Positions 3,899 through 53,731 of a stretch of 64,000 nt of DNA are shown piece after piece (positions within the stretch are counted from its first letter, which is position 1; each line of letters opens with the position of its first letter). The translations under genes and the position numbers were made by a program. The notes below the pieces were generated by a model. The model saw nothing but the letters and a program-made list of their open reading frames with translations, ran no database searches and had not been told where the DNA came from. The stretch covers positions 310,001 to 374,000 of the IMG/VR virus record IMGVR_UViG_3300032770_000001; one strand, given 5' to 3'.

Positions 3899-3905
3899 GA
3901 GACTC

Positions 3906-4517: not shown

Positions 4518-4529
4518 ATCGGAGGGTTT

Positions 4530-4979: not shown

Positions 4980-5011
4980 AATCAGGGAGTGATCGATCAT
5001 GGGAGGTCGTG

Positions 5012-8527: not shown

Positions 8528-8529
8528 CC

Positions 8530-8969: not shown

Positions 8970-9041
8970 GGCTATGGCAACGGCGAGATTGATTCTCTGG
9001 ATTCTTGTGGTTTTAGCGGTCATTCGACTAAGGGAGACTTT

Positions 9042-10442: not shown

Positions 10443-10450
10443 GAGGGATT

Positions 10451-13424: not shown

Positions 13425-13670
13425 ATGGCAAGCATTAACGTATCGGAAAAAGAGTTCCACGCGGTCGCTAGTGCGGCAAACGATGCGCTGGACAAAAACG
13501 AGGTTGAGGCCGCTTACACGCTGGACGATCTCGCCCGGAAGATAAACGCCGCTTTATCGAAGAACACGGCGCGACGAGCATTAGGTAACTATCCGGCAGT
13601 CGGCGGGAGCCTGCCAAAATTTGAGGTTGAATCGCCGCTGGAATCAAACGGTCGGCGACCGAAGAAATGA
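13425..13670 (+). CDS. hypothetical protein
   Basis: GGAG RBS; packing. Confidence 0.6.
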   Translation: MASINVSEKEFHAVASAANDALDKNEVEAAYTLDDLARKINAALSKNTARRALGNYPAVGGSLPKFEVESPLESNGRRPKK

Positions 13671-15136: not shown

Positions 15137-15317
15137 AGACTGTCCCGGCTGCCAGTCGATTAAGCAGTTCGAGGAACGACCGAACGGATGCACCTGTCCA
15201 GCACCGCACGAATCCGCTTTGCGGTACTGTTCGATTCATTGCTGCTGCTGGATGAACGCTGAGATCAACCTGTACGGACTTTGCCGACGTTGTGGGAAGT
15301 ATCCGCTCTACCACTAA
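15111..15317 (+). CDS. Cys-rich small protein
   Basis: 11 Cys in 68 aa; TAATG coupling to SET gene. Confidence 0.5.
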   Translation: MGTSGNCGEDCPGCQSIKQFEERPNGCTCPAPHESALRYCSIHCCCWMNAEINLYGLCRRCGKYPLYH

Positions 15318-19459: not shown

Positions 19460-19507
19460 ATTAGGCTAATACCAGCTTTCCAACCCTTTTTATGAGGGTT
19501 GACCCGG

Positions 19508-22204: not shown

Positions 22205-22205
22205 T

Positions 22206-23405: not shown

Positions 23406-23409
23406 GGTA

Positions 23410-25491: not shown

Positions 25492-25496
25492 ATTAG

Positions 25497-27182: not shown

Positions 27183-27183
27183 T

Positions 27184-38400: not shown

Positions 38401-41400
38401 ATTTCGACTTCAGGTTTTCGGTCAGCTTCTTGGTCGCCGCGACACGATCCTTCTTCGCCAGTTCAGGATCGTAACCTTGACTGATCCACCATTTCATCAT
38501 GGTCTTCGGGGCACCGAAATTGATGGTCTCCAGACGCGGCACATCGAGATAGTACATCTTCATTCCGCGAGTGGTGCCGCCTGCGAACGTCTTTGCGATA
38601 GACTTGACAGTCGTGAAATAGACGCCATAACCCAGATGGTGAACAGGTGCCGGAATGCCTTCGTGGTACGCCTGATTCTGATAACCGTGCTGGATGTCGC
38701 CGGAGCCTTCTTCGCCCTCGTAGACCACAAAACCCTGATCGCCAATAGCTTCGCGGCGGTCTTCGGTGGTGCCATGATACACCGGGCCGAATAGTTTGCG
38801 GTCGATAGCATCCTGCTGGCTGATGCGATTCATCTTCGCCATCTTGTCAAACACCACACTTGGAATCATCTTCTGAGCCGTAGCCTCTTTGTGTGACAGC
38901 TTAAAGCTCGCAGTCTGCGGTTGCTGTTCAGGCTGAACCTGTTCGACCTCGGTGGGCTCTACGGGCTCTTCCTTCTCCTCAGGCTTGACATACGTATTTG
39001 CGGGCTGTTGCTCACCCGGCTTGAGCCACATGATTTTGTACCCCATGCGCTCATCCCATTGCTTTTTGAAATCCTCAGGCACAGTGCCGTAGTGCACAAC
39101 GATGGGCATCATGCTGCCCTTTTCCTCACGGAAGGCTTCCGGGTCGTTGTAGTAGAACATGAGGTCGCGACCCTCGCGAATCTCCATCACGCATGTGATC
39201 TTGTTGCTGCCGCTATAACCAATGGGCTGCATCGAGCGAGCGTTCTGGAATGACCAGCCGCCTTTCTGCTGAATACGGAGCATGGAACGCAGGGTGCGAG
39301 TCAACTGCTCGGCGGCATTACGAAACACCGCTTCTCCCTGTTCGGTCGTCGGGATCACCGTATCTTTCGGTGGAACCTCAACATCATCGCCCATAACGCG
39401 GCGATAGGTGCGGGTGTAGTCGTAGTTACGGGCGTCGTACCCGTCCTTTTCGATTCGCTTTTGGTCAGACTTGAATGCGTGAGATGTGCGGCGAGTAATA
39501 GACGCCGTGAACACGCCCGGTAGAAGTTCACGAACACGTTTCTCAAGGTTTGCGTCCATCGTTAACTGCGACTCTTCGAGCCGACGCTTGATGGTCGCGA
39601 CGACGCGATCCACATACCGCTGTTGAGAATCAGCGTAAGCCTGCTTCATCGAGTCGGGCGCATTGGGCAGGGTCATCATGAAATGCTCGCCGATCAGGAA
39701 CTCAGAATCATTACCGTGCTCAAACGGAGCATCCAACCACGAAACGATGCTGTCCTCGTCGAGGAATAACGAGTTCGGCTGTCCTTCAACAACCACCATC
39801 ACCATACGATAATCGCCTGCGCTTCTGTTATGGCGAGGAGCGCCGAGAGCCGTCATCAGGTTGCGAGTCAAATAGATTCCGCCGTATGCCTGACGGCTGG
39901 GGCTCGTCATCCCGGCACTGGGATCATCCGCCCACTCTTTGCTCTTACCTTCGGGAACCAAACCTTCGCTCAAAATCGGGCGCAGGTTCTTGATGTCGGT
40001 GCCGTGGTAGTAAATCTGACGGTCAGCGGATTGTTTCTCACGTGGGGACGGAGAGATGTAATTGATGAATGTGTGCATCTCCATCAAAGCGTTCTCTTGG
40101 AACCGAAGCACTGACTGAATCGTGTGTTGTTCGCCGCCGAACTCGTTTTTATAGTCAGCGTACCACTCCTCAGCTTTCGTCAGATTTTCGGCTGCACTCG
40201 TCAACCGCTCCTGCAACATGTTCACATCTTTGCGCTTGGAGGTCTTGAGATACTGCTGGCAGTGGTTAAGCAATGTGAGTAGACGGGGCTGCTGCATCTC
40301 CACAACCGACTCGGCGACCGCAGGTTCGTTTGTGCGGAAGCGAGATGGGTGATGCAGGATAGTATCGTGCTCTGCAAGCAAGGAAGCATAACTCGTAACT
40401 GATCCACGTGGAGCAAATCCGTACCCCGGCTTCCAATCGACCTTGCGGTTTTTCGACGGACCTTTGCGATGAATGATCTTGATCTGCTGCTTGATAAGCG
40501 GTGCCAGACCTTCTGGCAGGCCGAACATGTTGCGCACCTGACCCTTATCATCGATCCAGAAAATCGCGTATTGACCTTCTTCGAACTGTCCGCCAGCCCA
40601 CTGGCTATCCAGAATTCGTTCGCTGAAGATATAGCTGTGATGCCAGTCCTTGCCGTCGCATTCGGCGAAGTCGTGGACTTCCTCGATCACGCCGTCCAGA
40701 ACTGAAGCGGCACCCATAACAAACGGCTTGCCTTTCCACGTGGCGTTATCCCCAGTGACGGCAGCCGCAGCCGCGTACTTCTTGAACGCCTTCGGCGTCC
40801 AGTAAATCTTGTAGTACCCGCCGTACTGATCTTTGGGGTCGTTGTTCGGCTCCTCAACCTTGGAGCAAACGCACTCAGCGACGGGCATCGCGTCGAAAGT
40901 AAAATAGACGGTTTCGCCAGCCAGCAAGATCGGGCGTCCCTTGTAAGCGTAGAACCGCTCCTGTGTCTCTGGGACCTCCCGGAAGAACCCCTCGCGGAAA
41001 TCGGACGGAACTTCGATGTACATCGCCTTCTTTAGCAGGCTGCCAGTCTTGGCATAGGGGTCTACAGTGCCCTGTAATTGCACAGCAAGGCCGCTGTACG
41101 TGCGCCATTCTCCCAAGGCGGACTCACGTGTGCCCAGAGCCCCCGGACGCGGCGTAAAGCTCAGAATCGCGATCTGATCGTCCGGCACTTGACCCAATGC
41201 CTCTACGTTCGAACTGAAAAAGAGAGGATTGAGCGGTCCACCCGCGTTCTCGCGAGCCGCGCACCATGTTTTGTAAAAGTCGAAGGATCGCTCCCGAAGT
41301 TCGGCTTCGGACATCGGCACCTTCCAGTACGACCAGCGGCGATTCCCCTCCGCATCCGTCCAACCATCACCCACGGGTTCGGCATTCGGCATCTCTTCCT

Positions 41401-43417
41401 GCGTCTTGCCCCGGTAGGATGAACTGCTCTCGATCTTTTTGCCCTCAATGAGTGCTTGTAGGTGGATGGGATAAGGTTTGCCGGGTCTCCAGTCCTTGTC
41501 CTGCGTCAAGTACGCCCCGCCCCACGTCACAGCTTCGTACAACCATGAACGCTGTGCTCCCACGCCCTTCTGTGCCATTTCAAGCATCTGAGGCACGGTA
41601 AGCTGCCCGGAGGCAACCTTCTTGCCCTCCACGACCGCAAGGTAAATTCCTTTGGCTATTTCGATGTCCTCAGTAAAGCTAATCGCCATACTGGTGCCGC
41701 CGCCCAACCCAGTACCTTCCGCCATCTGAAGTTGATAGCGAGTCTTCAGACCGCCCGACTGAACCGCAGATAGAGCGGTGGTCACATGGTAGAGAGTCTG
41801 TGGCAGGGGCTTGAATTGGCCCGGCATATAGAGCCCACGTTCCTTAGCGACCGTAGGATCAAGCCGTCCCTCGGAGATCGCCGCCAAAGCCGACTGCTCC
41901 CAATCCTGACGCCGCTTGTGACGTTCACGATTCTGTTCATCGGTCTCTTGCTCGAATATTTCTTGTCCCTTTTCGTCCTTGACGATCTTGGGATACGGGG
42001 CATACTCTTCCCGATTTTGTTCCCACGGCTCACCTGCCGCCGTAATCATCGTACCGGGTTGAACCTCATTTGGCTCTTCGTCATCCAGCTTGATAAGCTT
42101 CAACTGTGCTCCGTCACGCAGAGTGACTTCGTATTCATCGGGATTCTCAAAGTTCGCCACGAACGTCTGCCAAGGATCGACATCATTCTCGCTCTGAACT
42201 TCAGCGGTGATGGTCACCAGACGACCCTTCTTACCGCCCCCGCTCTGCCCCGACCAAAGCGAGGAGCCGCCCCAGTAAGCATCCGCCGCATCCGGGTTGG
42301 TCGTCCAGAATACTCCGGCACCATCCAGTTGGGGCTTTTGACCTTTTGGAACCTCAAGGGCTCGGTAGACGATCAGTGGAAATTCAAGGGTGTTAACCTG
42401 ACCGACCGCCTCGTCATACTTCCACTCCAGTTCCATGCGTTCGTCTTTGCTGCGAGGCAGCGGAAGCCCGTACTTCTGCTTGTAGAACTCTTTCAATGGT
42501 GGGGCATTGAATCTAATGCTGCCAGTCTTGGATGCGGTCGCAGGTTGGGCTTCGGCTTGAGGCTGTTGTTTGATAATCCCATTCTCGTCCCAAGGCAACT
42601 CCTGTTTCTGTTTCACCACAGGAGGCTTGTGCACTTTTGTATCGTAGTAGCTGCGAAGTGCCTGCTGGTATTGAGCCCAGTTGTTGACCACCCAACTTGT
42701 GACATCGCTCAGATCGTCGCTTTCGTAAATTGGGCGATCTTTGGCGTTCACAGGCAACTGCCACGTGCCGTAGTTGTTCATGATCGGCACGATGTCACGA
42801 GCCTCGGAGCCACGGAATATCACCTGAGGCTCATCGTCACCCGTGTGCCAGACCCGGATTCCGGACGCCCGGAAGAGAACTGCGTGCTTGCCGTACTTGG
42901 AACTGCCGCTGCGTGCGCCTGAGTAACGCATGAAATCGGAGAGTAAATAGGCGAAGTTGAAACCACCGGACTTTTTAGCGGCATCGCTGAACCATGTGGT
43001 TAAAGCGACACGATCCATATCGTCCATGCCGTACTTGAATCCGCTGGAAGCGATACCATCGGGATCATCGGTGAAGTGGATGAGCCACTGATTCTTGACC
43101 ATCCCCTCATAGCTCAACGTCAGATAGCTCGGTGCGTCGGCGGGGTTAGCGGATAGGATGGAGTTGGCTTCTTCCTCTTTGAAGCCCTGCATGAGTTTTT
43201 GGGAAAAGACGGACAAGTCCATGTCCATGACGGTATCGACGAGCGTCTCCGGATCATCTTCCTGCGGGAGCTTGTCCGCTTCATCGCTGTTTTGGACGTA
43301 GGCTACGAAATCCTGAGGGAACTTGAATACCATGTCCCGTGCGATGTCGGCATCGCTCATGGTCAGGTATTGTTTCAGCCAGTTAATCTCTTCGCCAAGA
43401 TAAGCCTGTTTTTCCAT
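32438..43417 (-). CDS. giant polyvalent protein (3659 aa): ~8 ART-like, 4 GNAT, 3 ParB-like, NUDIX, transglutaminase-like and unknown modules
   Basis: multiple YHGT/YHVT/VYR ART starts; GNAT RGxGxG loops; Nudix box GGAVKEGMGLAQSAKAELKEETG; DGxHR ParB motifs; C..H..D triad. Confidence 0.85.
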   Translation of the reverse strand: MEKQAYLGEEINWLKQYLTMSDADIARDMVFKFPQDFVAYVQNSDEADKLPQEDDPETLVDTVMDMDLSVFSQKLMQGFKEEEANSILSANPADAPSYLTLSYEGMVKNQWLIHFTDDPDGIASSGFKYGMDDMDRVALTTWFSDAAKKSGGFNFAYLLSDFMRYSGARSGSSKYGKHAVLFRASGIRVWHTGDDEPQVIFRGSEARDIVPIMNNYGTWQLPVNAKDRPIYESDDLSDVTSWVVNNWAQYQQALRSYYDTKVHKPPVVKQKQELPWDENGIIKQQPQAEAQPATASKTGSIRFNAPPLKEFYKQKYGLPLPRSKDERMELEWKYDEAVGQVNTLEFPLIVYRALEVPKGQKPQLDGAGVFWTTNPDAADAYWGGSSLWSGQSGGGKKGRLVTITAEVQSENDVDPWQTFVANFENPDEYEVTLRDGAQLKLIKLDDEEPNEVQPGTMITAAGEPWEQNREEYAPYPKIVKDEKGQEIFEQETDEQNRERHKRRQDWEQSALAAISEGRLDPTVAKERGLYMPGQFKPLPQTLYHVTTALSAVQSGGLKTRYQLQMAEGTGLGGGTSMAISFTEDIEIAKGIYLAVVEGKKVASGQLTVPQMLEMAQKGVGAQRSWLYEAVTWGGAYLTQDKDWRPGKPYPIHLQALIEGKKIESSSSYRGKTQEEMPNAEPVGDGWTDAEGNRRWSYWKVPMSEAELRERSFDFYKTWCAARENAGGPLNPLFFSSNVEALGQVPDDQIAILSFTPRPGALGTRESALGEWRTYSGLAVQLQGTVDPYAKTGSLLKKAMYIEVPSDFREGFFREVPETQERFYAYKGRPILLAGETVYFTFDAMPVAECVCSKVEEPNNDPKDQYGGYYKIYWTPKAFKKYAAAAAVTGDNATWKGKPFVMGAASVLDGVIEEVHDFAECDGKDWHHSYIFSERILDSQWAGGQFEEGQYAIFWIDDKGQVRNMFGLPEGLAPLIKQQIKIIHRKGPSKNRKVDWKPGYGFAPRGSVTSYASLLAEHDTILHHPSRFRTNEPAVAESVVEMQQPRLLTLLNHCQQYLKTSKRKDVNMLQERLTSAAENLTKAEEWYADYKNEFGGEQHTIQSVLRFQENALMEMHTFINYISPSPREKQSADRQIYYHGTDIKNLRPILSEGLVPEGKSKEWADDPSAGMTSPSRQAYGGIYLTRNLMTALGAPRHNRSAGDYRMVMVVVEGQPNSLFLDEDSIVSWLDAPFEHGNDSEFLIGEHFMMTLPNAPDSMKQAYADSQQRYVDRVVATIKRRLEESQLTMDANLEKRVRELLPGVFTASITRRTSHAFKSDQKRIEKDGYDARNYDYTRTYRRVMGDDVEVPPKDTVIPTTEQGEAVFRNAAEQLTRTLRSMLRIQQKGGWSFQNARSMQPIGYSGSNKITCVMEIREGRDLMFYYNDPEAFREEKGSMMPIVVHYGTVPEDFKKQWDERMGYKIMWLKPGEQQPANTYVKPEEKEEPVEPTEVEQVQPEQQPQTASFKLSHKEATAQKMIPSVVFDKMAKMNRISQQDAIDRKLFGPVYHGTTEDRREAIGDQGFVVYEGEEGSGDIQHGYQNQAYHEGIPAPVHHLGYGVYFTTVKSIAKTFAGGTTRGMKMYYLDVPRLETINFGAPKTMMKWWISQGYDPELAKKDRVAATKKLTENLKSKYDAVWFKGKGLHKLLDGDQIVVFDPSRVYEVDPSMTKPGDIGSKVQRKADGMKGVIRQIRNLAPDVGQQYYGGATRLLEVKWQKGGTDYNVYDRDVVFLDAKGKPVAGQEETTQASAAPAKEYDPNDPKVVEALAKILFGSPSIDWLSGGEATSWEQLPERTQKAYLRSAKWRLQNRPDEAKAYLEQTKTSAVKDDVDRLKKDYSTGVMFVDTNEALRKRKDDDLDTNDRQTVLDLDEAIESNPLPEATTVYRIVPDNAVMANEGSRFIDRGFVSCTLDGDPAWLDQLAKHIGLKKYDVLIINVPKGTGHLDIGGYQKEIVLGRGYQFKVDKFELDKVNDRAFRTCSIVGRVKTAALADGVEVIAEEIPKGVEAYAKLGGQRVGVVFLQLMEDAPGNPRAPKNSLMVDAASVAQHLQGQGIGLRIYQAGIAKAAELGYERLYEGIDHSPQAASVWEKLKKRYQTDFDDDWGLYYIVLGSTPKTGSEVPKGDVSKLTFETEENDNEYGGWTIRAWAPDRMPRPFAQYEGPVGFIDIGTEGAVIAGPYVYDINVEDAYRGTGLGQKLYDMAIVEAKKRGYKEFNSSIDQTPEAKAAWKRISQRYPVTKKRDKRDKLPYFSIKLAEGFNDEGFWAGEGNAASGVLPICTTTKRICFAWRSPDVHIGDCWGTIGGAVKEGMGLAQSAKAELKEETGYGGGVTMIPAYVFSSGSFSYHNFIGLVGTEFSFHPQSEHHWETTGLEWFTLDEINKMMEEDSGSFHPGLIALFKNSKDIIEKHAGGQKKQASLSDIREIVLDARESVIGSRRAQNGDCEPVSDAVYDALENAGYSPSIAYGYSNGIPHSWVIIDNTYIDATSDQFEDYEPYGSTPAPLDDIVREIRIGNINDADYKQNYNLSGQRTYSKRASSPEGDDKMPTTLDYVGERPLVIDEWARKPWEQRKQDIANAPLDEFDPSIVKTDQSVLVTADYDYFLQNPELINEPKANASEEHLAHPLFIDTDEGLFVFDGNHRTAAAKELGQMIKAYLIDLRGWEDGEKTGAGPVDVDYGSGMYKNFKLELEYGYHEYGDPTDPDLEIDENNWNLVTVRAFDTTQKGLTAQGKYAGSVDFVLRNNKLQSANTEVEPEYRRQGLATAMYMYAEEVVGHYVVPHSDRSPAGFGLWQQKNRPFGKGSSETTGSSEDDLEAQFNVKYPEAGQVVDGRTVLDQVDNMSSIAATFPNYLILDGIREVPFDEFDMPPDVTPRTKQLAEEIKQSGELMPLIVGVDPGGPFIVEGSHRYDALKILGAKSIPAVVVLDLDEFNKTASKTAAGVREIVVSTDFGTAEGYVASTTAEQLQNWLDRFNYTNEELVADIRQYDYFAVLNNINVYDSARGQGHGNDLLYKFLDEAESRGAKLCLLVADTAEEQAKGFNLIQWYENNDFEDIDMVAGGHLMMKVWGHPTEHTAAKKQRWSDEGLLNKSDALKYKRWWESRGHSVLLDKVHGGLYRVQLKLDPTHGKVAKQYGPVYHGTYKWSDNIHNDPKYRVGKFFCTDPLVAQAYGSFVYECYLTINKPFVVDAKNNGYYSIPTPKAMKGWFNGDEVDTDSIVSFAHERGYDGVIIKNVIELHHETLGNDDYIVFKPNQVKVKGIVEPEISPYTANKYHKQELQRRLQRDYKEGSVKTAKTMTMYHGTPHVFNEFAPTTGKRTLWGLAEVTVGSNAYFFTPDYQTAVNWAENRAGNPGNKRDKYVLTCQITMNNPVDFTNPNWIDEDVDVQPLPMGTTPPEHATRTLLEALRAYTEGQLNEQDWKEMGINIDMLEVTDPGMEWKLIDSKPVMDALRFLKYDGAILDEGNSPEFGGKSYCVFSPQQIKILKRTKVAGKAPEVTWVPDPDINDDRDFHYDPNVTLVPIEKIEGGEQMSRQGQTHYAEKVNRFARRMKQGGSKFKAIAVWPEKDGKYQIRDGHHRWLAALKAGVKTIGVHIFIKYEKWEPEWDEDTKTSAEFLSSEKSS

Positions 43418-43436: not shown

Positions 43437-46400
43437 TTAGGAAGGCTTCTTTTCGACTTTTTCCTGTTCAACAAAGTCCGGGCCTTCAGTTGGCTGAGCC
43501 GGAGCGACTTGCACATCCTGCAACTTTTTCTTTTTGTACACCGTATCCCGGTCGATGCCCAACTGCTTGCAGATCGGGCAGCTACGCGAGAGTCCGCCCT
43601 GATTCTTCAACCGCCGTTCGAAAGCACGGGTGACGGGCTTTTCTGGAGGGGCTCCCCAGATTTTGGCGACCGTGAATGTAAGCCCTTTTCCATGAAGAGC
43701 TTCTATCAGTTTTACGCCTGACGTGTTGTTGTAGTGTTCTTGGATGCGCGTTTGCGCGTCTTTAGCCCAGCCGAGATAGTGCCCAGCGTGGAACTTCCCG
43801 GTGGTAGCATCGGGACGGCTGGATGGAACCGTCTGACCCTGTCCGATGAGGAAGTGGAGGAGATACACCTGACCCGGCTCATTCATCTTGGCGGTCTTTG
43901 GCATAGTGTACGATTCTACATCCTTTTCGACTTCATCCAAAGAGTAGCCAATCGGACCGCCTTCCCAGTCCACGTAACCCTCTTCTTCGCTCAGGACGAC
44001 CTCCATATCTGACCATGAGCCTGCTTTGATCGGCTGCCACTGATCGTGCCAGTACATCTCGATCCGGCTCGGCGGAATGACTTCCTTGACCCATGCCTCA
44101 CGGAACTCTTCTTTTTCCTTAAGCTCATGGACGTTGTAAATCTCAGGTTCTCCAGTCTCCATTGCCATCTCTGGTGGAATGGTGACGCGGAGACAAATCG
44201 GAATAGACGCCTTGCCGTAAGCTTCCAGCGTATCGCGGAACACGATCTCGGCGTAGTACATTGCTCCACCGGGAGTCGGTGCGAAGAACGTCTTATCGTA
44301 ACTGAATTGACCCAACGATCCACCCCATTGCGGATTTTGTGATGGCTTGAGCCCGTTCTTGGCGATAGAGTTAATATTCTTGGCAGCCGTTGCGTGATAG
44401 AACACACGAGGCTCATTCGCTACTTTTGCCGTGACCATCTTGACGGGGGGCTCGATCCAGTTGTCGCCCTCGTACTGGATGCCTTCGAGTTCGAACTGCG
44501 TGCCCTCTTTCAATCGAACCTCTTTTTCCTCGTCCCCAGTGGACGGCATCATGTTGGCACTCAGCGTACCTTCCCAATCCACATCATTCTCGGTGATTAC
44601 GGCGTGCAGCGTGACGCTCGGTCCACCAGTACCCCAATGACATTCAGCGGCGTTCTCATCCCACGACCAGTACACGCCGACGCCTTTGTACTGGATCGAT
44701 TGGAGCCCTTGTTGGTATTCTTCCATCGGTGTGCCGGGAAACAGATGTTGTTGCGCCGGAGCCGGATATTCTCTGCCTCTGGTTTTTGAACCGACCTCCG
44801 GAACGGAAATGCAACGGTACACGTCCATCGGGAACACCCAGCGGTTGTAAGAAGCCACTAGCTCGTTGTACTTGTCTTCGTACTCATCTCTGGCACGTCT
44901 AATCATTTCCTGCTCACGCTGCCGCTGGTTTTTGATGTCCAGATCGTACCCGTATTGTTCTTCGAGTTGAACATCATAAGCGCCAAGAAGTCCCTTCATT
45001 CCGCCCTGCCGACGCAGCCACGTATTAAACGGGGCGAAACGTGCAGCCGAGGTTTTGCCCTGTCCGGACAAACGACTCAAAGTACGGCTGCCGCCCTCAA
45101 CAAACCAGCTTGCCAGATCGCTACGCTGATGCACCACGTTCAAAATTTTGTCAATGATCTGAAGCTTCTGTTCCGGCGATTGCGCCTTCTCCAGTTGGTC
45201 AGCCAGACCCCACAGCGGTTTCATGGCGTAATCGCTGATGCGCCAGTTGCCTTTTTCGTCATCGAAGAACGACGGCACCTGCTCCCAGTAGTCTTCCGGC
45301 AACTGAGCATCCAACATGTCCTGCGCATAAGCACGGGGATTTCCCGTCTCATGTCCAGTGAAGAATGTGTTGATTTGAAGTTTGTAGATGTTTTTGGTAA
45401 TCAACCACGCAATGTCATCAAGACCCTTCTCATCACGCACGTGCCCAGTTTTTGCCCAGTCATTCCAAATCTTGATGAGGCGACCAGCGGGGACAAGCTC
45501 CCACTTCATACGGTATTCCTTGTCGCCGAGATGATCGTTGTACTCGTTCAAAATCTGAAACTCAAGGTCGCTGTACAGTTCGGAATCAAACGCAACTTTG
45601 CGGGAGCCCGTCTTGCCGCTGAAATGTTTGATCGCCCAGCTAAGCGCCTTGGCTTCATCCTTGGCACCGAAGCTCTCCAGCTTTTGAACTTCTTCCTGAG
45701 TCTTCTGCTGTGGATACATCTCATCCCAATTCTCGACAATGTATCGAGCGAAGTAGTGCCACGGTTCATGGATCGCAATAAACTGGCTCGGCGGTACGTC
45801 GCCATTCATGATGACGTGGCGATACCCCTTTGCCCACTCATCCAATTCCTCTTGTGTAGGCTCAACATCATGAATCATGCGATTGCTGTTGGGGTCTTGA
45901 CGCCAGCCCTTATCCGGATAGTTGGCACGTTGACTGATCTGATCTGGTTTCGCCCAAAATTCGACGAATATGTTATTGTGCTCAGGCGGATAACTTGACG
46001 CCCAAACACCAGCCGATGGCTGCGGTCTGCCGGAACCGTCATCTCCGCGAGCCTTGGACGCGAGCAATCCCTGCGAGCGGATGCTTGCCAGATTCGCGTA
46101 ACTCTTAGTGTAATGGTACAGGCGAACGGTGCCCGGTGGTATTGGTGCGGTACCCGGCTCAGGTGCAAGCTCGGACTCACTGTTCACAGAAGCATGTTTG
46201 AGGGTGCCTTCATCCATCGGCTCTTCCCACCACAACTGCGTGCGACGAAGCTTGGGGAATGCTTGACCACCGATGCCCTCAAAGCCGTGCTGCGGCACCA
46301 TGTCATACTGATCGGCGTAAGCCAGCTTGGGTTTCTGGAGCCCCTCCTGAATATATCCTTCCTCATCCACCTGTGACATCGGATCGATGTTCGCACTGTA

Positions 46401-47225
46401 GATTGAAACCCAGCTAGAACCGTTCCAAACTTCAATATCATCCGGCATCAACGTGCCGTTATAGTAGAACGCTTCGGAGCCGGAATCATCAGTGCCGATG
46501 TCGTCCAACTTGAGCTTCCAGTCAGCCTGCTCACGCATACGCAGTACGCACGGAATCAAACCCTCTTCACCGGGTTCGTCAGAATTGTGGTAAGCGAACT
46601 CTTCGGCACGCATGACCCAAAACGAGACGCCTTTGGCGTCGGTCAGGAAGACTTTGCCAGCTTTGTGACCAGCGAGTGCCGGACCTCCGATACCGGATTC
46701 CGCACCGGGCGTTAATCCACCGGAGGCGATGCTATCCAGATTCTTCAAGTAGGTGACGTGGTAGATGTACTTGCCGGGGGAGGCGTATTCATAGCCCTGA
46801 TCGTCATAATCAAACGCGAATTTCTCGGTAAGTTGCCGACCAGCCGTGGGGATGTACTCGTATTTCCACATGCCTTCAATCTGCACTTCATTCAGTTTAT
46901 CGTTTGGAACGAAGAAACCGTCTTCCTTGTGCTCAGTGGTCTGTACGGCATCTTCCGGCACCCGCACTTTGATGATTGCCATCTCCGGCTTGCGGTTCTT
47001 GATTTCAGACCACGGCTTGCCGGAATCGGTCAGCTTCTTCCAGAATTTGCCTTCGGCGACCGAAGCATAAGCCTCGGAATACTTCAGATCGTCATAGAAG
47101 TAGATTCCATCACGTCCTTGCGGTGCGTAGTAGTTTCTCCAAAAACCCTGATCGATGGGCTTGAATCCTTCCGCTTTAATCTTCTCCGCAATTTCGACGG
47201 ACGTGACGTGGTAGAGGGTCAACAT
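43437..47225 (-). CDS. polyvalent protein (1262 aa): ~5 ART-like modules, an unknown module and a C-terminal GIY-YIG-like nuclease
   Basis: LYHVT, IYHVT, LYHYT, VYRC, FYHAT ART starts; 'VYLLHF..HYLGW..RIQEH..ERRLK..CPIC'. Confidence 0.8.
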   Translation of the reverse strand: MLTLYHVTSVEIAEKIKAEGFKPIDQGFWRNYYAPQGRDGIYFYDDLKYSEAYASVAEGKFWKKLTDSGKPWSEIKNRKPEMAIIKVRVPEDAVQTTEHKEDGFFVPNDKLNEVQIEGMWKYEYIPTAGRQLTEKFAFDYDDQGYEYASPGKYIYHVTYLKNLDSIASGGLTPGAESGIGGPALAGHKAGKVFLTDAKGVSFWVMRAEEFAYHNSDEPGEEGLIPCVLRMREQADWKLKLDDIGTDDSGSEAFYYNGTLMPDDIEVWNGSSWVSIYSANIDPMSQVDEEGYIQEGLQKPKLAYADQYDMVPQHGFEGIGGQAFPKLRRTQLWWEEPMDEGTLKHASVNSESELAPEPGTAPIPPGTVRLYHYTKSYANLASIRSQGLLASKARGDDGSGRPQPSAGVWASSYPPEHNNIFVEFWAKPDQISQRANYPDKGWRQDPNSNRMIHDVEPTQEELDEWAKGYRHVIMNGDVPPSQFIAIHEPWHYFARYIVENWDEMYPQQKTQEEVQKLESFGAKDEAKALSWAIKHFSGKTGSRKVAFDSELYSDLEFQILNEYNDHLGDKEYRMKWELVPAGRLIKIWNDWAKTGHVRDEKGLDDIAWLITKNIYKLQINTFFTGHETGNPRAYAQDMLDAQLPEDYWEQVPSFFDDEKGNWRISDYAMKPLWGLADQLEKAQSPEQKLQIIDKILNVVHQRSDLASWFVEGGSRTLSRLSGQGKTSAARFAPFNTWLRRQGGMKGLLGAYDVQLEEQYGYDLDIKNQRQREQEMIRRARDEYEDKYNELVASYNRWVFPMDVYRCISVPEVGSKTRGREYPAPAQQHLFPGTPMEEYQQGLQSIQYKGVGVYWSWDENAAECHWGTGGPSVTLHAVITENDVDWEGTLSANMMPSTGDEEKEVRLKEGTQFELEGIQYEGDNWIEPPVKMVTAKVANEPRVFYHATAAKNINSIAKNGLKPSQNPQWGGSLGQFSYDKTFFAPTPGGAMYYAEIVFRDTLEAYGKASIPICLRVTIPPEMAMETGEPEIYNVHELKEKEEFREAWVKEVIPPSRIEMYWHDQWQPIKAGSWSDMEVVLSEEEGYVDWEGGPIGYSLDEVEKDVESYTMPKTAKMNEPGQVYLLHFLIGQGQTVPSSRPDATTGKFHAGHYLGWAKDAQTRIQEHYNNTSGVKLIEALHGKGLTFTVAKIWGAPPEKPVTRAFERRLKNQGGLSRSCPICKQLGIDRDTVYKKKKLQDVQVAPAQPTEGPDFVEQEKVEKKPS

Positions 47226-50200
47226 TACTCAAACTCCTCCGGGATCAACGTTTCAAGTGCAGGCAATCCCTCGACACCATGCGTGCGCTCCGGGATGTTG
47301 GCGTAGCCATTGTTCTCCAGACCTTCACCGTAATCCCCGCTGTCGTAACGAGTGTCACTCAGAGGCGGCGTTTTATGGGACGAAGATTTGTCAAACGTCA
47401 TCAGGAACGGCCCTTGCTTCAACTTTTCCAAATCAGAGCCAACCAGCGTGCCGAGGTATTCCAAGTCTTCCGGCTTGCACAAGAAGTTGGTGTACTGCTG
47501 CCACGAGTGTTGAACCGCTTCTTCCTTCGTGTAAGAAAGATTAGTCACCTTGGATGGTTCCGACATCAACCGTTCCCAGCCTTTGATAACGTTCTCCACC
47601 TGTTCCTGATGGTGGGAACCTTGGAAGTTTTTAATGCGAGCCACGACCACGGCAGGCTCGCCAGAGATGCGGCTGTTCTTTACGTCACGAGTTGACCACT
47701 TGCCAGTGACGTATGCCTCGATCTGAGCCGCGACCTCACCACCTTGTCCGGCAAAACGGGTCGCAACCTCACCCGCAGGGGTGGTGCTGACCAAGTGGTG
47801 TTCCATCGAATAGCTACGCTCCAGCGACTCCAACGCCTTTTGACGCTTGCGTGGAATCTGATCGATAGTCTTGCCATACTTCGACAGAACCTCGTTGAGA
47901 ATCTCTATGAACTCCAGACCACGGAAGCCATCCTTGGCAATGATCCGGGCGATATCCACCGTGGTGCCGTGATAGACGATCCCCGCACGCCAGTCCTGCT
48001 TAAGCTGCTCCCATGCGTCTGCTGCGGCAGTTTTCTTCGAATTGACTCTACGCAAACTGAGTTGTTCCGGGGTCAGGTCTGGGATGGTCTGCGCCCACGT
48101 AGAGCCGTGGAATGTACCTAGTGGAACCCATGCCTCATAAAGCACGAGCCCACGAGCTTTCAATCCCCGGTCGCGTCCGGCTTGCTGCATTGCCGTGGCA
48201 CCATCCTGCGCCAAGAATGAGCCTTTGCGTAATCCTTCGCGGTCGATGATAGCGGCGGTCGCGGACGGTGTCGCGTGATACAGGCGGACGCGGTTGTTCT
48301 CGATGGGAAGTTTGTTGCGTTCTGCCCAATCACGATTCTTCTCTTCCTGCGTCCACTCCGCGTAGGGTTTGCTGTTTGCTTTCTTGTTCCAAGGATAGTT
48401 CGCCATGTAGTATGCGTATTCTTTCGTGGCAGCTTCTTCCTTTTGTTCACGGGTGAATGGCGCTTTTACTGGGTAGTTCGGGTCTTTCCACACCGCTTCC
48501 GGGATAACAATGGAGTGGTCTTCAGTAATCGGCAGCATTCCGATTCTTGAAAGGTCTGGGTCGTATCCTACAAACTTTTTTGGGTAATGCGTGACGTGAG
48601 CGTGCCCCTTCGAACCGTCCTGCATCTTCCCTTCTGTATCCCACAGCCGCACTTCGACGCTGAAGTTGTTCACGTCGGAGTCAGGCGTCACCTGAATCGT
48701 GACGGTGTCTTTGTAGAACAGCATCTTGCCGTTCTTGAACTCTTTCACCTTGTCCCACATTGCGCCTGCGATCTTGCTGCCGACTTTCTGGATGAAACTA
48801 CCATCCGGAACCACAGCGGAGATCGAGCCCTCATCTTCGCTCACATTCTTGTAGTAGACACCGCGACGAGCCTGACCACGGGTGATTTGACCTCGCATGA
48901 TGCTGTTGGCTTTGAAGTCCTGTCTCGGATCGTTGGGGGTGTTCACCATATCGCCCACAATCTTCACCGGAAAGATGTCCGGCTTCATTGTCGGAGCGAC
49001 CTGAGTACCATCGGAAAACTTTGCTTTATTCGCCCAATCGCCGGGATAGAAATCCTCATCCGGTAGGGGTGTACCCTGTCCCCCTGCGCTATAGCCAGTC
49101 GGGAAAATTCCGTGCTTAGCCAGAGACTTCTTGCCCATGAGTAAAGTCTTGCCGTACTCTCGCGTGCCGTCCCATTCACCCTGTGCCGGGTATCCGATAC
49201 GGGCCGTCAATGCATCCTTTGCGGCTTGGAATGTACCGATGTGCAGCCCATACGCCGCACCACGCAACTCGCCGGATGGCGAACCGTGGTAGTAGGTGGT
49301 GTTATCGACGAACTTCGCCCCAGTCTTTCCTTTCGGTGCGCCCTTGCTGGCTTCGGCAATCCACGCTTCCTGTCCGGCATCGATCATCGCTTTTAGCATA
49401 TTCAAAGTGCTGCGAGCACCATCGAAGTCCCAATTTCCCAACGAAACGGCGGCGTCACGAGCGAGAGTCTGTGGGCGGTTATAAACGCGAAGCGCAGCAT
49501 GAGCTTCAGCATACCGTTTGCTCACTGCCTTAAAATCAGCGATGGCCTCATCCAATGTCTTACCCTTGAGTTTGCCATCTTTCTGCACTCCATAGTTGCC
49601 ACGCATGTTACCTTGCATCTCACGTTCGAAGCCATACGCATTTTCGAGTACACGCAGAACTTTCTCGGTCTTCTCTTTCACGCTGCCGTAACCAAATGAG
49701 CCGTTGATGATGGCGACCCGCTCATTCATGCGGTGGGTGAGATCGCCACAGTGCTCCACCACGAAGCTGTATACTCCGGCTCCGAGTGGGTGGTGTTGGA
49801 TGCGGAGCATGGCGTGCTCCGGGGCCCCACGTTGTTCGTCTGCCAACTCGATAAATGCGGCATACTCTTTCACACGAGCCTCACGCATTTCAGTGTAAGT
49901 CTGGAAGTGTTGCTTCTCTTCAGGATCAGTGATTTCAGCACCGACCTTAGAGATGTCAGCGTTCGGAGCTTCAGCCCAGAGTTTAGCCAGTTTCTCTTCC
50001 ACGTCCTTACTGCGTGCCAAGTTCCAGCCGTTGAATTGTCCGATTTTCGCTTTGCCACGACCGAAGTCGGGATCGTCAGTCTGCACCAGACGATATTCAC
50101 CGCCCTCCCAATTGAGTTTGCTCAGATAATCCATCGCTTGACGACTGAGGTTAAACGCATACTGCCAGCCAAGGCGGACACCGCGAGGGCCGTACTTGAA

Positions 50201-51694
50201 TTCGTTGATGAGAACGTAAACGTTACGTCTCGGCTGAACGATCTCGTTCTTGTCGATCAGCATCTTCTCGGTCACGAAGTTGGCACCATACTTTGCGTTG
50301 AAACGACGGGCAATTGCACGCCATCCCGAACCGTGACCATAGCCACGATATTGGAGCATCTTGTAGGCATCGAGACCCATACGCAGCACCTTCGGACGCT
50401 CATTCAGAAGCAGGTCTTCGTGATGTGCAAGTTCGTGTGCAACCACACGAGGCAGGAGTTTGTCATTACCGACCATGTCGCTCTGAATTGAAATTGTAGT
50501 GTTCTCATCAGCGTAGACCTGACCGTTCGCATCCTGCCCATACCGCCAGTGACAGTCACCACCAGTGGGCTCAGCGGCACGATTGACAATCTTGATCGTT
50601 GGACGCGGTAGACCCGGCGATAGCACCGCCATCATCTCGGTGACAACGTTCTGCACTTTGCCATAGGGGTCTTCTTCGGCTGCCAATTTCGGTGACTTGG
50701 AAGCGTGCATTCCCATTGCACGTTCAAGCTGCACGACTTCCTGCGTCTCACTCTTACGAGACAAGGCGACTTCACGCACCATGAAACTGATGCCCTTCAA
50801 GCCGTCGAGACCTTCATATTTTTGCGAGACATCCGGCTTGACATACGCCAACGTGATGTGTGGTTGATAATCCGGGAAGTTATCCGGGCGATTGCCGATT
50901 TCGGCATCGATCTTTTCTTTGAGTGTTTTGAGTCCGGAACCTACAACCTCGATCACAATCGGGGCGGTACCTTCCGACGCTTCGGACGGAGTGAACACGT
51001 GGAGCTTGCCGAACGTGACTGGAAACGGAGTCACGCCCTGAACCGCACGACGGAGTCCTTCGGCGTCCTCATCCACACCGTACTTAAGTGTGATGTGCGC
51101 CTGCATCTCACGTCCCTTGCCTGCTAAGTCTTCATCTGGAATCAGAGCCTTGCTGAACTGCTCCAGCTTCCCGGCGATATTGTCCGGAACATTGACCTGT
51201 GTCGATGCGTTGGAATACGCAGCGAACTTCGGTGTGCGGAACGTCTTCGCCTGCGACATGGGCACCATCACCGATACGCGGGGGTAGCCCATGTCGCGAA
51301 GCACAGCAAAGCGGTGCCGACCATTGGTAAAGCTTACGCCGCCACGGTCATCGTAATCGTTATAGGAAATCAGCGGGGCTTCAATCGGAGTGCCGGGGTT
51401 GTCCTTGAGCCATTTCTGGAACCGCTCGTAACGTCCGTGGATGGCATTCTCGGTGCCGCCCGGTCCGACGTAGAATCCGGGCGGATCGCTTGCCTTCCAC
51501 TCCGCATCAAGTTTTGCGGTATCAACGTTGACTAGGACGTAGTCTTTACTGCCCCGCATGTGGGACGGGCGGGTGAACTTAATTGGCGGCAGGTCAGCGG
51601 GATTTCCGCTTGGCTTTGAGGGCTGCGATGGCGTAGCGTGATTTTCTTCCGGCGTATCTGACGCGGCGGTGATTTTTTGCAGAAGTGGATTCAT
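47225..51694 (-). CDS. polyvalent protein (~1489 aa): ParB-like, 2H phosphoesterase, SprT-like metalloprotease, 3 ART-like and unknown modules
   Basis: 'FTNGRHR'; HITL x2; 'HELAHH..GHG..W'; YYHGS, LYHAT, VYHGT; start chosen at MNPLLQKITA. Confidence 0.8.
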   Translation of the reverse strand: MNPLLQKITAASDTPEENHATPSQPSKPSGNPADLPPIKFTRPSHMRGSKDYVLVNVDTAKLDAEWKASDPPGFYVGPGGTENAIHGRYERFQKWLKDNPGTPIEAPLISYNDYDDRGGVSFTNGRHRFAVLRDMGYPRVSVMVPMSQAKTFRTPKFAAYSNASTQVNVPDNIAGKLEQFSKALIPDEDLAGKGREMQAHITLKYGVDEDAEGLRRAVQGVTPFPVTFGKLHVFTPSEASEGTAPIVIEVVGSGLKTLKEKIDAEIGNRPDNFPDYQPHITLAYVKPDVSQKYEGLDGLKGISFMVREVALSRKSETQEVVQLERAMGMHASKSPKLAAEEDPYGKVQNVVTEMMAVLSPGLPRPTIKIVNRAAEPTGGDCHWRYGQDANGQVYADENTTISIQSDMVGNDKLLPRVVAHELAHHEDLLLNERPKVLRMGLDAYKMLQYRGYGHGSGWRAIARRFNAKYGANFVTEKMLIDKNEIVQPRRNVYVLINEFKYGPRGVRLGWQYAFNLSRQAMDYLSKLNWEGGEYRLVQTDDPDFGRGKAKIGQFNGWNLARSKDVEEKLAKLWAEAPNADISKVGAEITDPEEKQHFQTYTEMREARVKEYAAFIELADEQRGAPEHAMLRIQHHPLGAGVYSFVVEHCGDLTHRMNERVAIINGSFGYGSVKEKTEKVLRVLENAYGFEREMQGNMRGNYGVQKDGKLKGKTLDEAIADFKAVSKRYAEAHAALRVYNRPQTLARDAAVSLGNWDFDGARSTLNMLKAMIDAGQEAWIAEASKGAPKGKTGAKFVDNTTYYHGSPSGELRGAAYGLHIGTFQAAKDALTARIGYPAQGEWDGTREYGKTLLMGKKSLAKHGIFPTGYSAGGQGTPLPDEDFYPGDWANKAKFSDGTQVAPTMKPDIFPVKIVGDMVNTPNDPRQDFKANSIMRGQITRGQARRGVYYKNVSEDEGSISAVVPDGSFIQKVGSKIAGAMWDKVKEFKNGKMLFYKDTVTIQVTPDSDVNNFSVEVRLWDTEGKMQDGSKGHAHVTHYPKKFVGYDPDLSRIGMLPITEDHSIVIPEAVWKDPNYPVKAPFTREQKEEAATKEYAYYMANYPWNKKANSKPYAEWTQEEKNRDWAERNKLPIENNRVRLYHATPSATAAIIDREGLRKGSFLAQDGATAMQQAGRDRGLKARGLVLYEAWVPLGTFHGSTWAQTIPDLTPEQLSLRRVNSKKTAAADAWEQLKQDWRAGIVYHGTTVDIARIIAKDGFRGLEFIEILNEVLSKYGKTIDQIPRKRQKALESLERSYSMEHHLVSTTPAGEVATRFAGQGGEVAAQIEAYVTGKWSTRDVKNSRISGEPAVVVARIKNFQGSHHQEQVENVIKGWERLMSEPSKVTNLSYTKEEAVQHSWQQYTNFLCKPEDLEYLGTLVGSDLEKLKQGPFLMTFDKSSSHKTPPLSDTRYDSGDYGEGLENNGYANIPERTHGVEGLPALETLIPEEFE

Positions 51695-52127
51695 CCCATT
51701 CCTTACGAACAACTTGCAGCGGTCTGACCGTAGGCCAATAGGCAATTCGGCAGACCTTCCGCTTGGTCTTTTTGCCCTCATTTAGGACTTCAATAGCACA
51801 GATACCCATGACCATCTCCTGACTGTCTTGGGAGTGTTCTAGGTCCGTGTCACCGAAGCGCGTGTCCTTACAATTCGGGTGCGTGTGAATCGTCCCTAAG
51901 AATGAATACCCGGCTTCTTTGGCGTCGTCCTCATGATCGTCAAGCTCCTGATCGTCGTAGGACAGCGTCTTCATGGACTGGGTAAAGTCCATAGGGATGA
52001 AAGCACAGATATATAGGGTATCACCGCGAATCTCGCCCCACAAGGCTTCCATGTGTTCCAGCGGGAAAGCGTAGAGGGAGCGGCGGCGAAACTTCGCCTC
52101 TTCCTTCTTGTCTACTACTATTTTCAT
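51594..52127 (-). CDS. JAB/MPN-like metallopeptidase
   Basis: 'PLEHMEALWG' and 'GTIHTHP..GDTD' approximate the JAMM E...HxH-x7-S-x2-D motif (Ser position is Gly). Confidence 0.7.
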   Translation of the reverse strand: MKIVVDKKEEAKFRRRSLYAFPLEHMEALWGEIRGDTLYICAFIPMDFTQSMKTLSYDDQELDDHEDDAKEAGYSFLGTIHTHPNCKDTRFGDTDLEHSQDSQEMVMGICAIEVLNEGKKTKRKVCRIAYWPTVRPLQVVRKEWDESTSAKNHRRVRYAGRKSRYAIAALKAKRKSR

Positions 52128-52159
52128 GAAGGGTGCGACCGACACGTTGTTTTCCCCGC

Positions 52160-53731
52160 TTACTTTTTGAGAGCTTCGACTTTGAGTTCCTGCGCTCGCT
52201 GATAAACCTTCGAGCGTACATCTGATGGAAGAACCGCTAAAGTATTGTACGGCTTTCCCGGCACGATCTCATCCATCGCCTGATGGACATACCCCATATC
52301 GCCTGTCGGTTGGTCCGGGAATTTGTAGCCTGCTCGCTCCCACATCTCACGGTAGTTATCGGCTTTCTTGGCGATAGCGCGAACTGCCTTGAAGAAGGGC
52401 TGAGACGAAGCGTACACGGGAACCCCACCAATGTCGAGCGGCGGTTTCCCCTGCATCACCGGATCAGCGATAGCTTCGGCTGCGCACTTGACATCGTCCA
52501 ATGTCAGTGAAGCTACCTTACCTGCGGAACGGTCTTTCAAATTATCGGCAAGGGCGGCGGCGATCTCGAAGCGGAGGTCCTCGGAGGTACGTCCCTCAAT
52601 GGCTTCCTGCAACTTCTCAAGCTGCTGCTCACCTGCCTGTACGATTTGGTTCAGGTCGTTGAGCAACTTCAACTCTTGGGGAGTAAGTTTGCCCTTTTCG
52701 GGCTTGTAGAGGAGATCATGCGTGACCTCAGCCCATGCGTGCATCAGCACGGAGGCGACTTGAATTTCAACCTGCGTGTCGGCATAACGAAGTTCTTTTT
52801 TGCGGAGAGTTTCAGGACGCAACCGGACGAGGTAGTGGGTTGCAACGTAACCCAGCGTATCGCCCTCTTCTGGTTGACTCGATTCAGGAAAGTGTTTGGG
52901 CTCCCGCACCGAGACGAACAATTGATTGATAATCGTCCCGACGTGGTCGCGGTCGGCAGGCATGTATAAAGCCACGCGACATCCGGCGAGATCGACGATG
53001 TCATCGTAAATTTCGCGGAAGCTCTGGTAGTGCTTTTTCTTATCCCGCTTGAACAGCTTCTTTTCAAGACGAGACGGACGCTTGGCACGCGAGGAAACGA
53101 CGGCTTTGATGCCTGCCTCCTGTAATGCCTGATCGAGCTTGTCCTGCACGAGGCTAGCGCACTCCTGATAGAAGTCAACCTCGTGCTCATAGTTCTTCAA
53201 AAATGCTTCGATCACCGTGTATTTACGATCCGCATTCTGATCGGCGGTTTTGCGGGACTTAGGGTTTTGTAACAGTTCCGCAACAATCGAGGAAGTTTTC
53301 TGCTCATCCTGTTCTTCCTGATGCTCTTTCACGATGTCGAACAGGTAGTCAAACTTGACCTCGGAGATATCCCCCAGATACTTTTCCGGTACATGCTCCA
53401 GATAGGTCTTTTCCGCCTCTTCGAGAGTGTCGAAACCGAGCAGAATTTTGTACTCGTCAAACTCGCCGGAATCATCGATTTGTTCGACAATATAGGCATA
53501 TTCGGCATCTTTGTCCGGACCGATATAGATATCAACTTTCTCCTGATCGCCAACTCCAGTGGTGTCCGGGATGTAGCCGTAATCTGCTTTCATCTCAGTT
53601 TTGAAGGTCTTACCTTCAGGCGTGGTGCCGACGCGGGTGCTTCCTGCGGGCCATTCAATGATGACCGGAAGTCCTTGAAATTCAGTGCTGTGCTCCTGCG
53701 GGAGCTTGTCGGCTGTGATCGATTTCATCAA
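52160..53731 (-). CDS. inorganic pyrophosphatase-like - RelA/SpoT synthetase fusion (polyvalent protein)
   Basis: 'IEWPAGSTR..DYGYI..GD..VDIYIG..FDEYKILLGF'; 'SRAK..DLAGCRV..GYVATHY..EIQV...HAWAEVTHDLLYK'. Confidence 0.85.
   Translation of the reverse strand: MMKSITADKLPQEHSTEFQGLPVIIEWPAGSTRVGTTPEGKTFKTEMKADYGYIPDTTGVGDQEKVDIYIGPDKDAEYAYIVEQIDDSGEFDEYKILLGFDTLEEAEKTYLEHVPEKYLGDISEVKFDYLFDIVKEHQEEQDEQKTSSIVAELLQNPKSRKTADQNADRKYTVIEAFLKNYEHEVDFYQECASLVQDKLDQALQEAGIKAVVSSRAKRPSRLEKKLFKRDKKKHYQSFREIYDDIVDLAGCRVALYMPADRDHVGTIINQLFVSVREPKHFPESSQPEEGDTLGYVATHYLVRLRPETLRKKELRYADTQVEIQVASVLMHAWAEVTHDLLYKPEKGKLTPQELKLLNDLNQIVQAGEQQLEKLQEAIEGRTSEDLRFEIAAALADNLKDRSAGKVASLTLDDVKCAAEAIADPVMQGKPPLDIGGVPVYASSQPFFKAVRAIAKKADNYREMWERAGYKFPDQPTGDMGYVHQAMDEIVPGKPYNTLAVLPSDVRSKVYQRAQELKVEALKK

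Follow-up and report, generated by a model that had tools for sequence, protein, structure and literature searches.

A 2H phosphoesterase module with likeness to both Acb1 and LigT in a polyvalent protein of a wetland megaphage

An intact 2H module within a large phage protein

We analysed a stretch of viral DNA of 64,000 nucleotides (nt), here called the window, which spans positions 310001-374000 of the IMG/VR record IMGVR_UViG_3300032770_000001, and focused on a 2H phosphoesterase module encoded on its minus strand within a polyvalent (multi-effector) protein. The record is a single virus of 455,708 bp, rated complete by CheckV. Near-identical DNA was found in four wetland metagenome runs, and a megablast comparison of 12 kb of the window with phages gave no match. 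The original prediction had placed two HxT motifs in a module between the strings KFAA and HAS/KLAA, and we confirmed both the motifs and their setting, which we assign to the minus strand, at residues 189-358 and with coordinates agreeing within 2-3 nt (Table 1). A plus-strand reading of 50710-51215 was ruled out, that frame being full of stops. The genome contains one 2H domain, the module described here.

Residues are numbered on the longest open reading frame (ORF), P0001. The gene probably starts at M30 (position 51694), which gives a protein of 1489 amino acids (aa), as an AAGGA sequence lies 5 nt upstream of this ATG and the alignment of the orthologue P0005 (65% identity) begins at residue 30. 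The gene call in the public database starts at M75 (51559) and gives 1444 aa (P0004).

Table 1. Features of the window discussed in the text, with residues of P0001 where they apply
Feature	Position	Strand	Residues	Details
HNH + RNA ligase gene	13667..14713	+		PF09414 96.5 bits; phrog_24030; not linked to the 2H module
Giant polyvalent protein gene	32438..43417	-		3659 aa; ART-PolyVal, ADPrib_exo_Tox, GNAT, NUDIX and ParB modules
Polyvalent protein gene	43437..47225	-		1262 aa; weak ART/KptA-like signatures; L128 orthologue 52-63% identical
Polyvalent protein gene, 2H-bearing	47225..51694	-		longest ORF 47225-51781, 1518 aa (P0001)
SprT/Wss1-type zincin metallopeptidase module	49946..50677	-	369-612	HELAHH at 50420-50437; directly after 2H
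Linker KLAA	50678..50689	-	365-368	between 2H and zincin modules
HAS	50699-50707	-	359-361	
2H phosphoesterase module	50708..51217	-	189-358	PF13563 and PF02834 over cut-off; AlphaFold2 model
YQPHITLAY	50843-50869	-	305-313	
Second HxT motif, H308-I-T310	50852..50860	-	308-310	inside FPDYQPHITLAY; aligns with Acb1 H113/T115
AHITLKYG	51077-51100	-	228-235	
First HxT motif, H229-I-T231	51089..51097	-	229-231	aligns with Acb1 H44/T46 and ThpR H43/T45
Linker KFAA	51218..51229	-	185-188	N-terminal module border; KFAG in orthologue P0005
Prok-JAB metalloprotease-like gene	51594..52145	-		directly upstream of the 2H-bearing gene; PF14464 29.8 bits, cut-off 25
InPase + RelA/SpoT nucleotidyltransferase gene	52160..53731	-		PF18823 113 bits; PF04607 42.9 bits

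The identity of the module as a 2H phosphoesterase, likewise part of the original prediction, is borne out by several lines of evidence. The HxT/HxT tetrad is complete, the module scores 48.2 bits on 2_5_RNA_ligase2 (PF13563; cut-off 27, E=1.5e-12, profile positions 2-149 of 152) and 37.3 bits on LigT_PEase (PF02834; cut-off 23.3), and its AlphaFold2 model is compact, with a predicted local distance difference test score (pLDDT) of 94.9. In A1, an alignment of 65 sequences of the polyvalent-type 2H family on which that model was built, the catalytic His of the second motif never varies, and each of the other tetrad residues, the first His and the two Thr, is kept by at least 90% of the members. 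By its HxT motifs, Pfam scores and fold the module belongs to the 2H superfamily, and it is predicted to be catalytically intact and active.

The family to which it belongs is large. An exhaustive HMMER search of 1.84e9 representative proteins returned 3139 homologues at E<=1e-3, of which 1346 reached E<=1e-10; among the best 150, 116 were at least 500 aa and 72 at least 1000 aa long (maximum 5252 aa), and only 14 had 260 aa or fewer. The family comprises more than 3000 clusters at 50% identity, mostly within phage polyvalent proteins of 500-5000 aa. Relatives are encoded on at least 480 IMG/VR contigs, and the open frames that contain the best 80 are 500 aa or longer in 72 cases. The module thus belongs to a 2H clade found almost only within phage polyvalent proteins. 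A word-index search with the module alone gave only two stand-alone homologues, owing to the length window of that search. The nearest clusters in ESM-Atlas are viral, and the Acb1 Pfam family is found in 48-62% of their members, alongside PF13563.

Position between Acb1 and LigT/ThpR

Profile comparisons tie the polyvalent-type family to two groups of characterised enzymes, Acb1, which counters the antiphage signalling system based on cyclic oligonucleotides (CBASS), and the LigT/ThpR cyclic phosphodiesterases (CPDases). In hhalign, A1 matched a nine-sequence Acb1 alignment (A2) with a probability of 96% (E 4e-9) over 100 columns covering both HxT motifs, and a nine-sequence, enterobacterial ThpR alignment (A3; one ThpR locus with an internal stop was replaced) with a probability of 92% (E 7e-7) over 107 columns that begin at the first strand and end at the second HxT. 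In the direct comparison of the Acb1 and ThpR profiles no relationship was detected (probability 4%). As A1 links to both families and these miss each other, the polyvalent-type family forms a bridge between them. A hidden Markov model (HMM) of Acb1 matched all 65 sequences of A1 (56 with E<1e-3) and gave the window module 23.9 bits, and the Pfam Acb1 model (PF23474) matched 59 of the 65. HMM scores from A3, a narrow alignment, understate the likeness to LigT at large, and we gave weight to Pfam, NCBIfam and structure instead. As controls, T4 gp57B scored 202.7 bits on the Acb1 model and only 13 on PF13563, and E. coli ThpR scored 79 and 52.9 bits on the LigT-type models and 149.8 on TIGR02258. 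The top PDB match of the module by sequence was Acb1 (7T26), with a weak E value of 0.13.

Beyond the alignment of the catalytic tetrads (H44, T46, H113 and T115 in Acb1; H229, T231, H308 and T310 in the module), Acb1 and the polyvalent-type family have the motif [FY]PDYxPHITL[AS]Y in common. Acb1 stacks nucleobases on the aromatic residues Y12, W74, F107 and W147, contacts adenine through E141 and closes a lid over the cyclic dinucleotide (PMC9117128). Two of these four positions appear to be kept as aromatics: W74 aligns with the invariant F78 of the family, and F107 probably corresponds to F118, as placed by an ungapped alignment with the protein of Erwinia phage FBB1, although hhalign puts F107 one column off. 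The organisation of the genes differs, as Acb1 (T4 gp57B; FBB1, 7T26/7T27) is encoded by a 150-aa gene next to 57A, whereas the module is embedded in a 1500-aa protein. It is also about 25 residues larger than Acb1 and has a LigT-like N-terminal half, which aligns with ThpR and not with Acb1.

Structural comparison by VIA-align placed the AlphaFold2 model, the C-terminal residues of which have a pLDDT of about 58, among 2H proteins (Table 2). At Z>=8 there were 68 PDB chains, and those listed at Z>=9.9 were all 2H proteins. The best match was E. coli LigT/ThpR (4QAK/5LDI), which resembles the module in size and in the layout of the N-terminal strands and helices, at 18% identity. The Arg of the ThpR HxTxxR motif (R130, invariant in A3) is Tyr in the module and in at least 90% of A1, and it is Tyr in Acb1, too. 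Unlike LigT/ThpR, the module is phage-borne, fused and without RNA-repair neighbours. Three viral proteins that use the 2H fold against nucleotide second messengers, coronavirus ns2, the rotavirus VP3 2'-5' phosphodiesterase (PDE) and the avipoxvirus cGAMP PDE, were matched at Z 10.4-12.6, but they come from eukaryotic viruses, have 12-20% identity and give no evidence of specific kinship with the module. Another match was a PDE of Burkholderia phage BCSR5, on which no enzyme paper was found in the literature. In BFVD, the best match was a segment of a 1030-aa protein of an uncultured phage (TM 0.83), and proteins named Acb1 appeared from rank 26 on.

Table 2. PDB structures matching the AlphaFold2 model of the 2H module in VIA-align (rmsd, root-mean-square deviation)
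Structure	Z	rmsd	Residues aligned
E. coli LigT 4QAK	16.3	2.3	152 of 174
Deinococcus CPDase	16.3	3.3	159
Thermus CPDase (1IUH)	16.0	3.3	157
Usb1	14.9	2.9	162
Arabidopsis CPDase	13.5	3.5	158
Acb1 7T26	13.1	2.9	134 of 137
Mouse hepatitis virus (MHV) ns2	12.6	2.8	138
Phage BCSR5 PDE (9Q2Y/9Q2G)	12.0	3.0	143
Penguinpox cGAMP PDE	11.7	3.1	148

Linkers, zincin and the gene island

The zincin module that follows the 2H module scores 24.2 bits on the Pfam SprT-like model, just under the cut-off of 25.6, and its HELxHH motif and one further His are invariant in alignment A4. Its AlphaFold2 model (pLDDT 85) is most similar to the SPRTN protease 6mdx (Z 10.8), followed by minigluzincins and Wss1, and we regard the module as a candidate processing peptidase. 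Behind the zincin, the protein has further modules, which are unassigned. The ends of both the 2H and the zincin models are of low confidence. KFAA and KLAA, at the borders of the 2H module, are instances of a recurrent pattern, K-[TFLIVM]-[AGS]-[AGS], which also occurs as KTGS, KTAA and KTSA (window 32438-53731, minus strand). The four proteins of the block contain 12, 7, 2 and 2 copies, against 3.4, 1.7, 1.0 and 0.4, respectively, expected from shuffles, an enrichment of three- to fivefold in three of them and twofold in the other. In the 3659-aa protein, none of the 12 copies falls within a detected domain, and seven are at most 28 residues from a domain border. Among related proteins, the 116 that are 500 aa or longer contain 116 occurrences of KT[AGS][AGS] against 43.6 expected; relatives often have PFGxxKTA[AS] directly behind the 2H module, and their 2H-zincin junctions, 3-15 aa in length, contain similar K-x-[AT]-[AS] strings. 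As judged from these sequences, the pattern fits flexible linkers that could be candidate processing sites.

The 2H-bearing gene is part of a co-directional minus-strand block that comprises an SNF2 helicase, glycosyltransferases, the InPase + RelA/SpoT and Prok-JAB genes and those for the 1262-aa and 3659-aa proteins. The same island recurs in five further contigs, and these form a clear series of gene fusions and fissions. L212 (438 kb) has separate genes in the same order, InPase-RelA/SpoT, JAB, 2H, ADP-ribosyltransferase (ART), zincin and GNAT (3822-11386), and L004 (6 kb) has the three genes InPase, zincin and 2H (3577-5286), an InPase-only gene taking the place of InPase-RelA/SpoT. In L130 (458 kb), the zincin has its own gene and the 2H module opens a 1606-aa protein (7961-14821); in L128 (19 kb), the 2H-bearing protein is split into parts of 811 and 844 aa (5037-12469); and in L129 (244 kb), the InPase-RelA/SpoT gene is followed by a 2531-aa protein with zincin and 2H. 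Counting the window, there are six independent contexts in which the 2H module is preceded by a gene for InPase, with or without RelA/SpoT. The gene fissions show the modules to be capable of working as separate proteins. Of the earlier description of the module as embedded in a polyprotein, the embedding stands, as this is a discrete module in a multi-module protein, and the polyprotein itself is plausible, given the conserved linkers, the adjacent zincin and the gene fission in relatives.

The Prok-JAB gene overlaps the likely start of the 2H-bearing gene by about 100 nt, and in L212, too, a JAB gene immediately precedes the 2H gene, which stands alone there. JAB proteases include Cap3 of CBASS, and a counter-CBASS or processing role for the gene is conceivable. 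At the other end of the 2H-bearing protein, a C-terminal tail of the form HKTPP[LM]SDTxY... (residues ~1466-1518; window 47225-47380, minus strand) is also found in P0031, recurs directly behind the 2H module of a relative and is present in the L128 orthologue; it may be a targeting or terminal element that polyvalent proteins share.

Some further assignments were considered and rejected. The hits to a true KptA in the genome were all far below threshold and inside giant proteins; an ART module in the C-terminal half of the 2H-bearing protein was not supported by BLAST against the ART-PolyVal of the neighbour (E 0.07, not significant); and a ParB module in the N-terminal region was not significant by BLAST against the ParB of the neighbour, a GRHR hint being a weak PHROG match alone.

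Elsewhere in the genome, a complete T4-type PNKP (AAA_33 + HAD_PNKP; G000:C1:212578-213762, L131:3579-4763) forms with the HNH + RNA ligase a separate RNA-repair set, near which lie a peptide deformylase and a MerC-like gene. The plus strand of the window further encodes a protein with the type IV restriction endonuclease N-terminal domain GmrSD_N (10915-11754), a SET-domain (lysine methyltransferase-like) protein (15281-15844, 77 bits) and an RNA polymerase alpha C-terminal domain protein (28884-29546) followed by a ClpB-like AAA+ ATPase (30360-31571), the last of which L129 and L130 have conserved upstream of their polyvalent islands.

Proposed function and alternatives

Polyvalent proteins, as defined by Iyer, Burroughs, Anand, de Souza and Aravind in 2017 (PMC5512222), carry several unrelated effector domains and a zincin in one phage polypeptide, and both features are found here. 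That work devotes a section to 2H domains in polyvalent proteins, lists 2H, InPase, RelA/SpoT and DdrB-ParB as specific to those of the phage type, proposes zincin processing and virion delivery for polyvalent proteins and predicts that the 2H domains are RNases or degrade the nucleotides of defence systems (PMC5512222, sections 20 and 33). The same modules (zincin, ART, GNAT, ParB, InPase and RelA/SpoT) accompany 2H in the published systems and here, the present case coming from a 456-kb wetland megaphage. As its role had already been predicted in 2017, the module is a member of a known, predicted kind, and no experimental test of the prediction was found in the literature searched. The present analysis adds where the clade stands between Acb1 and LigT, a linker motif of the form K-T-small-small and the series of fusions and fissions.

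Our preferred interpretation, put forward tentatively, is that the module destroys small nucleotides of host defence in the style of Acb1, as a 2H phosphodiesterase that is injected or acts early. The 2H-bearing protein would be made late, packaged and injected with the DNA, and might be cut at the short K-[T/hydrophobic]-small-small linkers. The 2H module, freed or still tethered, would then act by metal-independent acid-base catalysis via a 2',3'-cyclic phosphate intermediate, its likeliest substrates being CBASS-type cyclic di- or trinucleotides or 2'-5'-linked signals. The action would be Acb1-like, with the difference that the enzyme would be there from the moment of entry. Besides the sequence kinship with Acb1 and the lack of RNA-repair genes linked to the module in the six contexts, two observations speak for the degradation of defence nucleotides: the conserved partners of the module, InPase, RelA/SpoT, NUDIX and ParB, are nucleotide-centred, and several of the structural matches (MHV ns2, rotavirus VP3 and the penguinpox cGAMP PDE) are viral 2H proteins that destroy immune nucleotides. 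The predicted anti-signal activity of the module is plausible.

Packaging in the virion we infer from the relatives and from the arguments of Iyer et al. (PMC5512222). A 3928-aa protein (L104 7253-19036) combines this type of 2H module with an N-terminal lytic transglycosylase or internal-virion-protein domain, another relative, gp321 of Tunturiibacter phage Tunturi_5, sits between connector and tail genes, and the relatives in BFVD include fusions with structural proteins and with proteins annotated as functioning in capsid morphogenesis. The first of these, L104, lies in a 71-kb viral contig. In the genome studied here, Terminase_6N gave no match and the structural module was not located. 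Five large ORFs at 19499-28149 on the plus strand (901, 410, 693, 561 and 321 aa) have no Pfam match, and only one of them has PHROG matches, to families without a known function; possibly these ORFs encode virion proteins, which would be relevant to packaging.

Several findings weigh against an injected enzyme of Acb1 type. The substrate is not readable from the 2H fold, and the fold itself is nearer to LigT than to Acb1, at Z 16.3 against 13.1; the Foldseek ranking agrees, with CPDases and Usb1 as the top matches. On the Pfam Acb1 model the module scores 25.8 bits, below the cut-off of 27 and over profile positions 68-116 of 144 only, while PF13563 and PF02834 are over threshold. Y12 of Acb1 seems to have no counterpart, the corresponding region being unaligned and without an aromatic residue, and the C-terminal lid of Acb1 (EPLxLxW, with E141 and W147) is absent: the alignment to the Acb1 profile stops before it, and the tail of the module is a low-confidence linker without Trp. 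With Y12 and the lid missing, an Acb1-type pocket is not demonstrated. As to delivery, family-model scans recognised no virion gene beside the island in this genome. The label Acb1-like in the original prediction therefore holds for kinship, Acb1 being among the nearest characterised relatives by sequence, and does not extend to the curated family, the pocket or the fold. Greater closeness to LigT-type enzymes, together with inactivity on cyclic oligonucleotides, had been named there as the outcome that would speak against it, and the structural half of that outcome is what we found. The module is both Acb1-like and LigT-like and passes the curated thresholds of neither Acb1 nor ThpR. The further suggestion of anti-type III CRISPR activity is without support and does not follow from Acb1, since rings with more than three bases do not fit the Acb1 pocket (PMC9117128).

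The closeness to LigT suggests a different role, RNA end-healing, in which the module, like CPDases of the LigT/ThpR and Trl1 types, would open the 2',3'-cyclic phosphate ends that arise on tRNAs or mRNAs when anticodon nucleases of the host, or other RNases that need no metal, cut them, and so feed the phage RNA ligase. LigT/ThpR and other CPDases are the best structural matches (Z 15-16.3, rmsd 2.3-3.3, ~150-159 residues), and a route from 2H through KptA to ligase has been described (PMC9503650, section 3.7.3); an RNA ligase is present in the genome, the gene cluster of the module shows weak KptA-like signatures, and the ThpR equivalog TIGR02258 is the best NCBIfam match, in line with the ThpR-like N-terminal half. 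Yet the module fails that model, with 28.6 bits against a cut-off of 65.7, and has Tyr for the Arg of HxTxxR. The ligase is 37 kb away on the opposite strand, in none of the six contexts is the 2H module found linked with an RNA ligase or kinase, no KptA was found above threshold genome-wide, and polyvalent-type 2H domains are never associated with RNA ligases (PMC5512222). Since the genome has its own RNA ligase and a complete T4-type PNKP, which already heals such ends, end-healing has no need of the 2H module, and we consider this role rather unlikely.

Usb1, the next structure in line, might point to an RNase, offensive or processing, that would be injected as an anti-host effector and trim or cleave the 3' ends of host RNA in the manner of Usb1/Mpn1, leaving cyclic phosphates. 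Human Usb1 aligns at Z 14.4-14.9 over 161-163 residues and takes ranks 3 and 6-8 in Foldseek, such a function has been proposed where 2H domains are fused to MuF or portal domains (PMC5512222, section 20), and the neighbouring modules include host-modifying enzymes such as ART and GNAT. Against it stand a sequence identity to Usb1 of only 13-15%, conserved neighbours that are nucleotide-centred rather than RNA-centred and the failure of family-model scans to detect an RNA-binding module beside the 2H domain; an RNase of this kind is distinctly improbable. The same ART-type modules, many of which lie in the co-directional cluster together with a NUDIX module and faint KptA-like hits, might instead call for the clean-up of NAD or ADP-ribose products, with the module hydrolysing ADP-ribose 1''-2'' cyclic phosphate (Appr>p) or a related product of KptA-like or ART modules, as plant and yeast CPDases do; the Arabidopsis Appr>p CPDase is matched at Z 13.5. 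We think this very unlikely, as none of the KptA-like hits comes near the threshold, the likeness to ART in the 2H-bearing protein itself is not significant and the closest conserved partner is InPase-RelA/SpoT, not ART. Inactive 2H domains exist in other families, the only point in favour of a catalytically silent module that would bind nucleotides or RNA or serve as a structural spacer in the giant protein, and with no direct evidence for it, the two His and two Thr of the tetrad retained by at least 90% of 65 diverse relatives and a compact, confident model, this is hardly credible.

The degradation of defence nucleotides can also be set in a wider frame. The polyvalent 2H clade would then be both the evolutionary bridge between LigT-type CPDases and Acb1, possibly the source of Acb1, and a virion-delivered degrader of immune nucleotides, freed from a true polyprotein by the zincin or the JAB protease at the linkers and acting within an injected anti-signalling kit with InPase-RelA/SpoT, NUDIX and ParB. 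Taken as a whole, this combination is unlikely to hold in every part.

If the module degrades CBASS-type signals, phages could bring with them ready-made anti-signalling enzymes that act ahead of phage gene expression, and this would, if true, hold for a family that is uncharacterised and very large, with more than 3000 clusters and at least 480 viral contigs. With 170 aa, the module is easy to express and assay, so the prediction of 2017 is quickly decidable. The family links Acb1 to LigT-type enzymes and thereby helps to explain the origin of Acb1.

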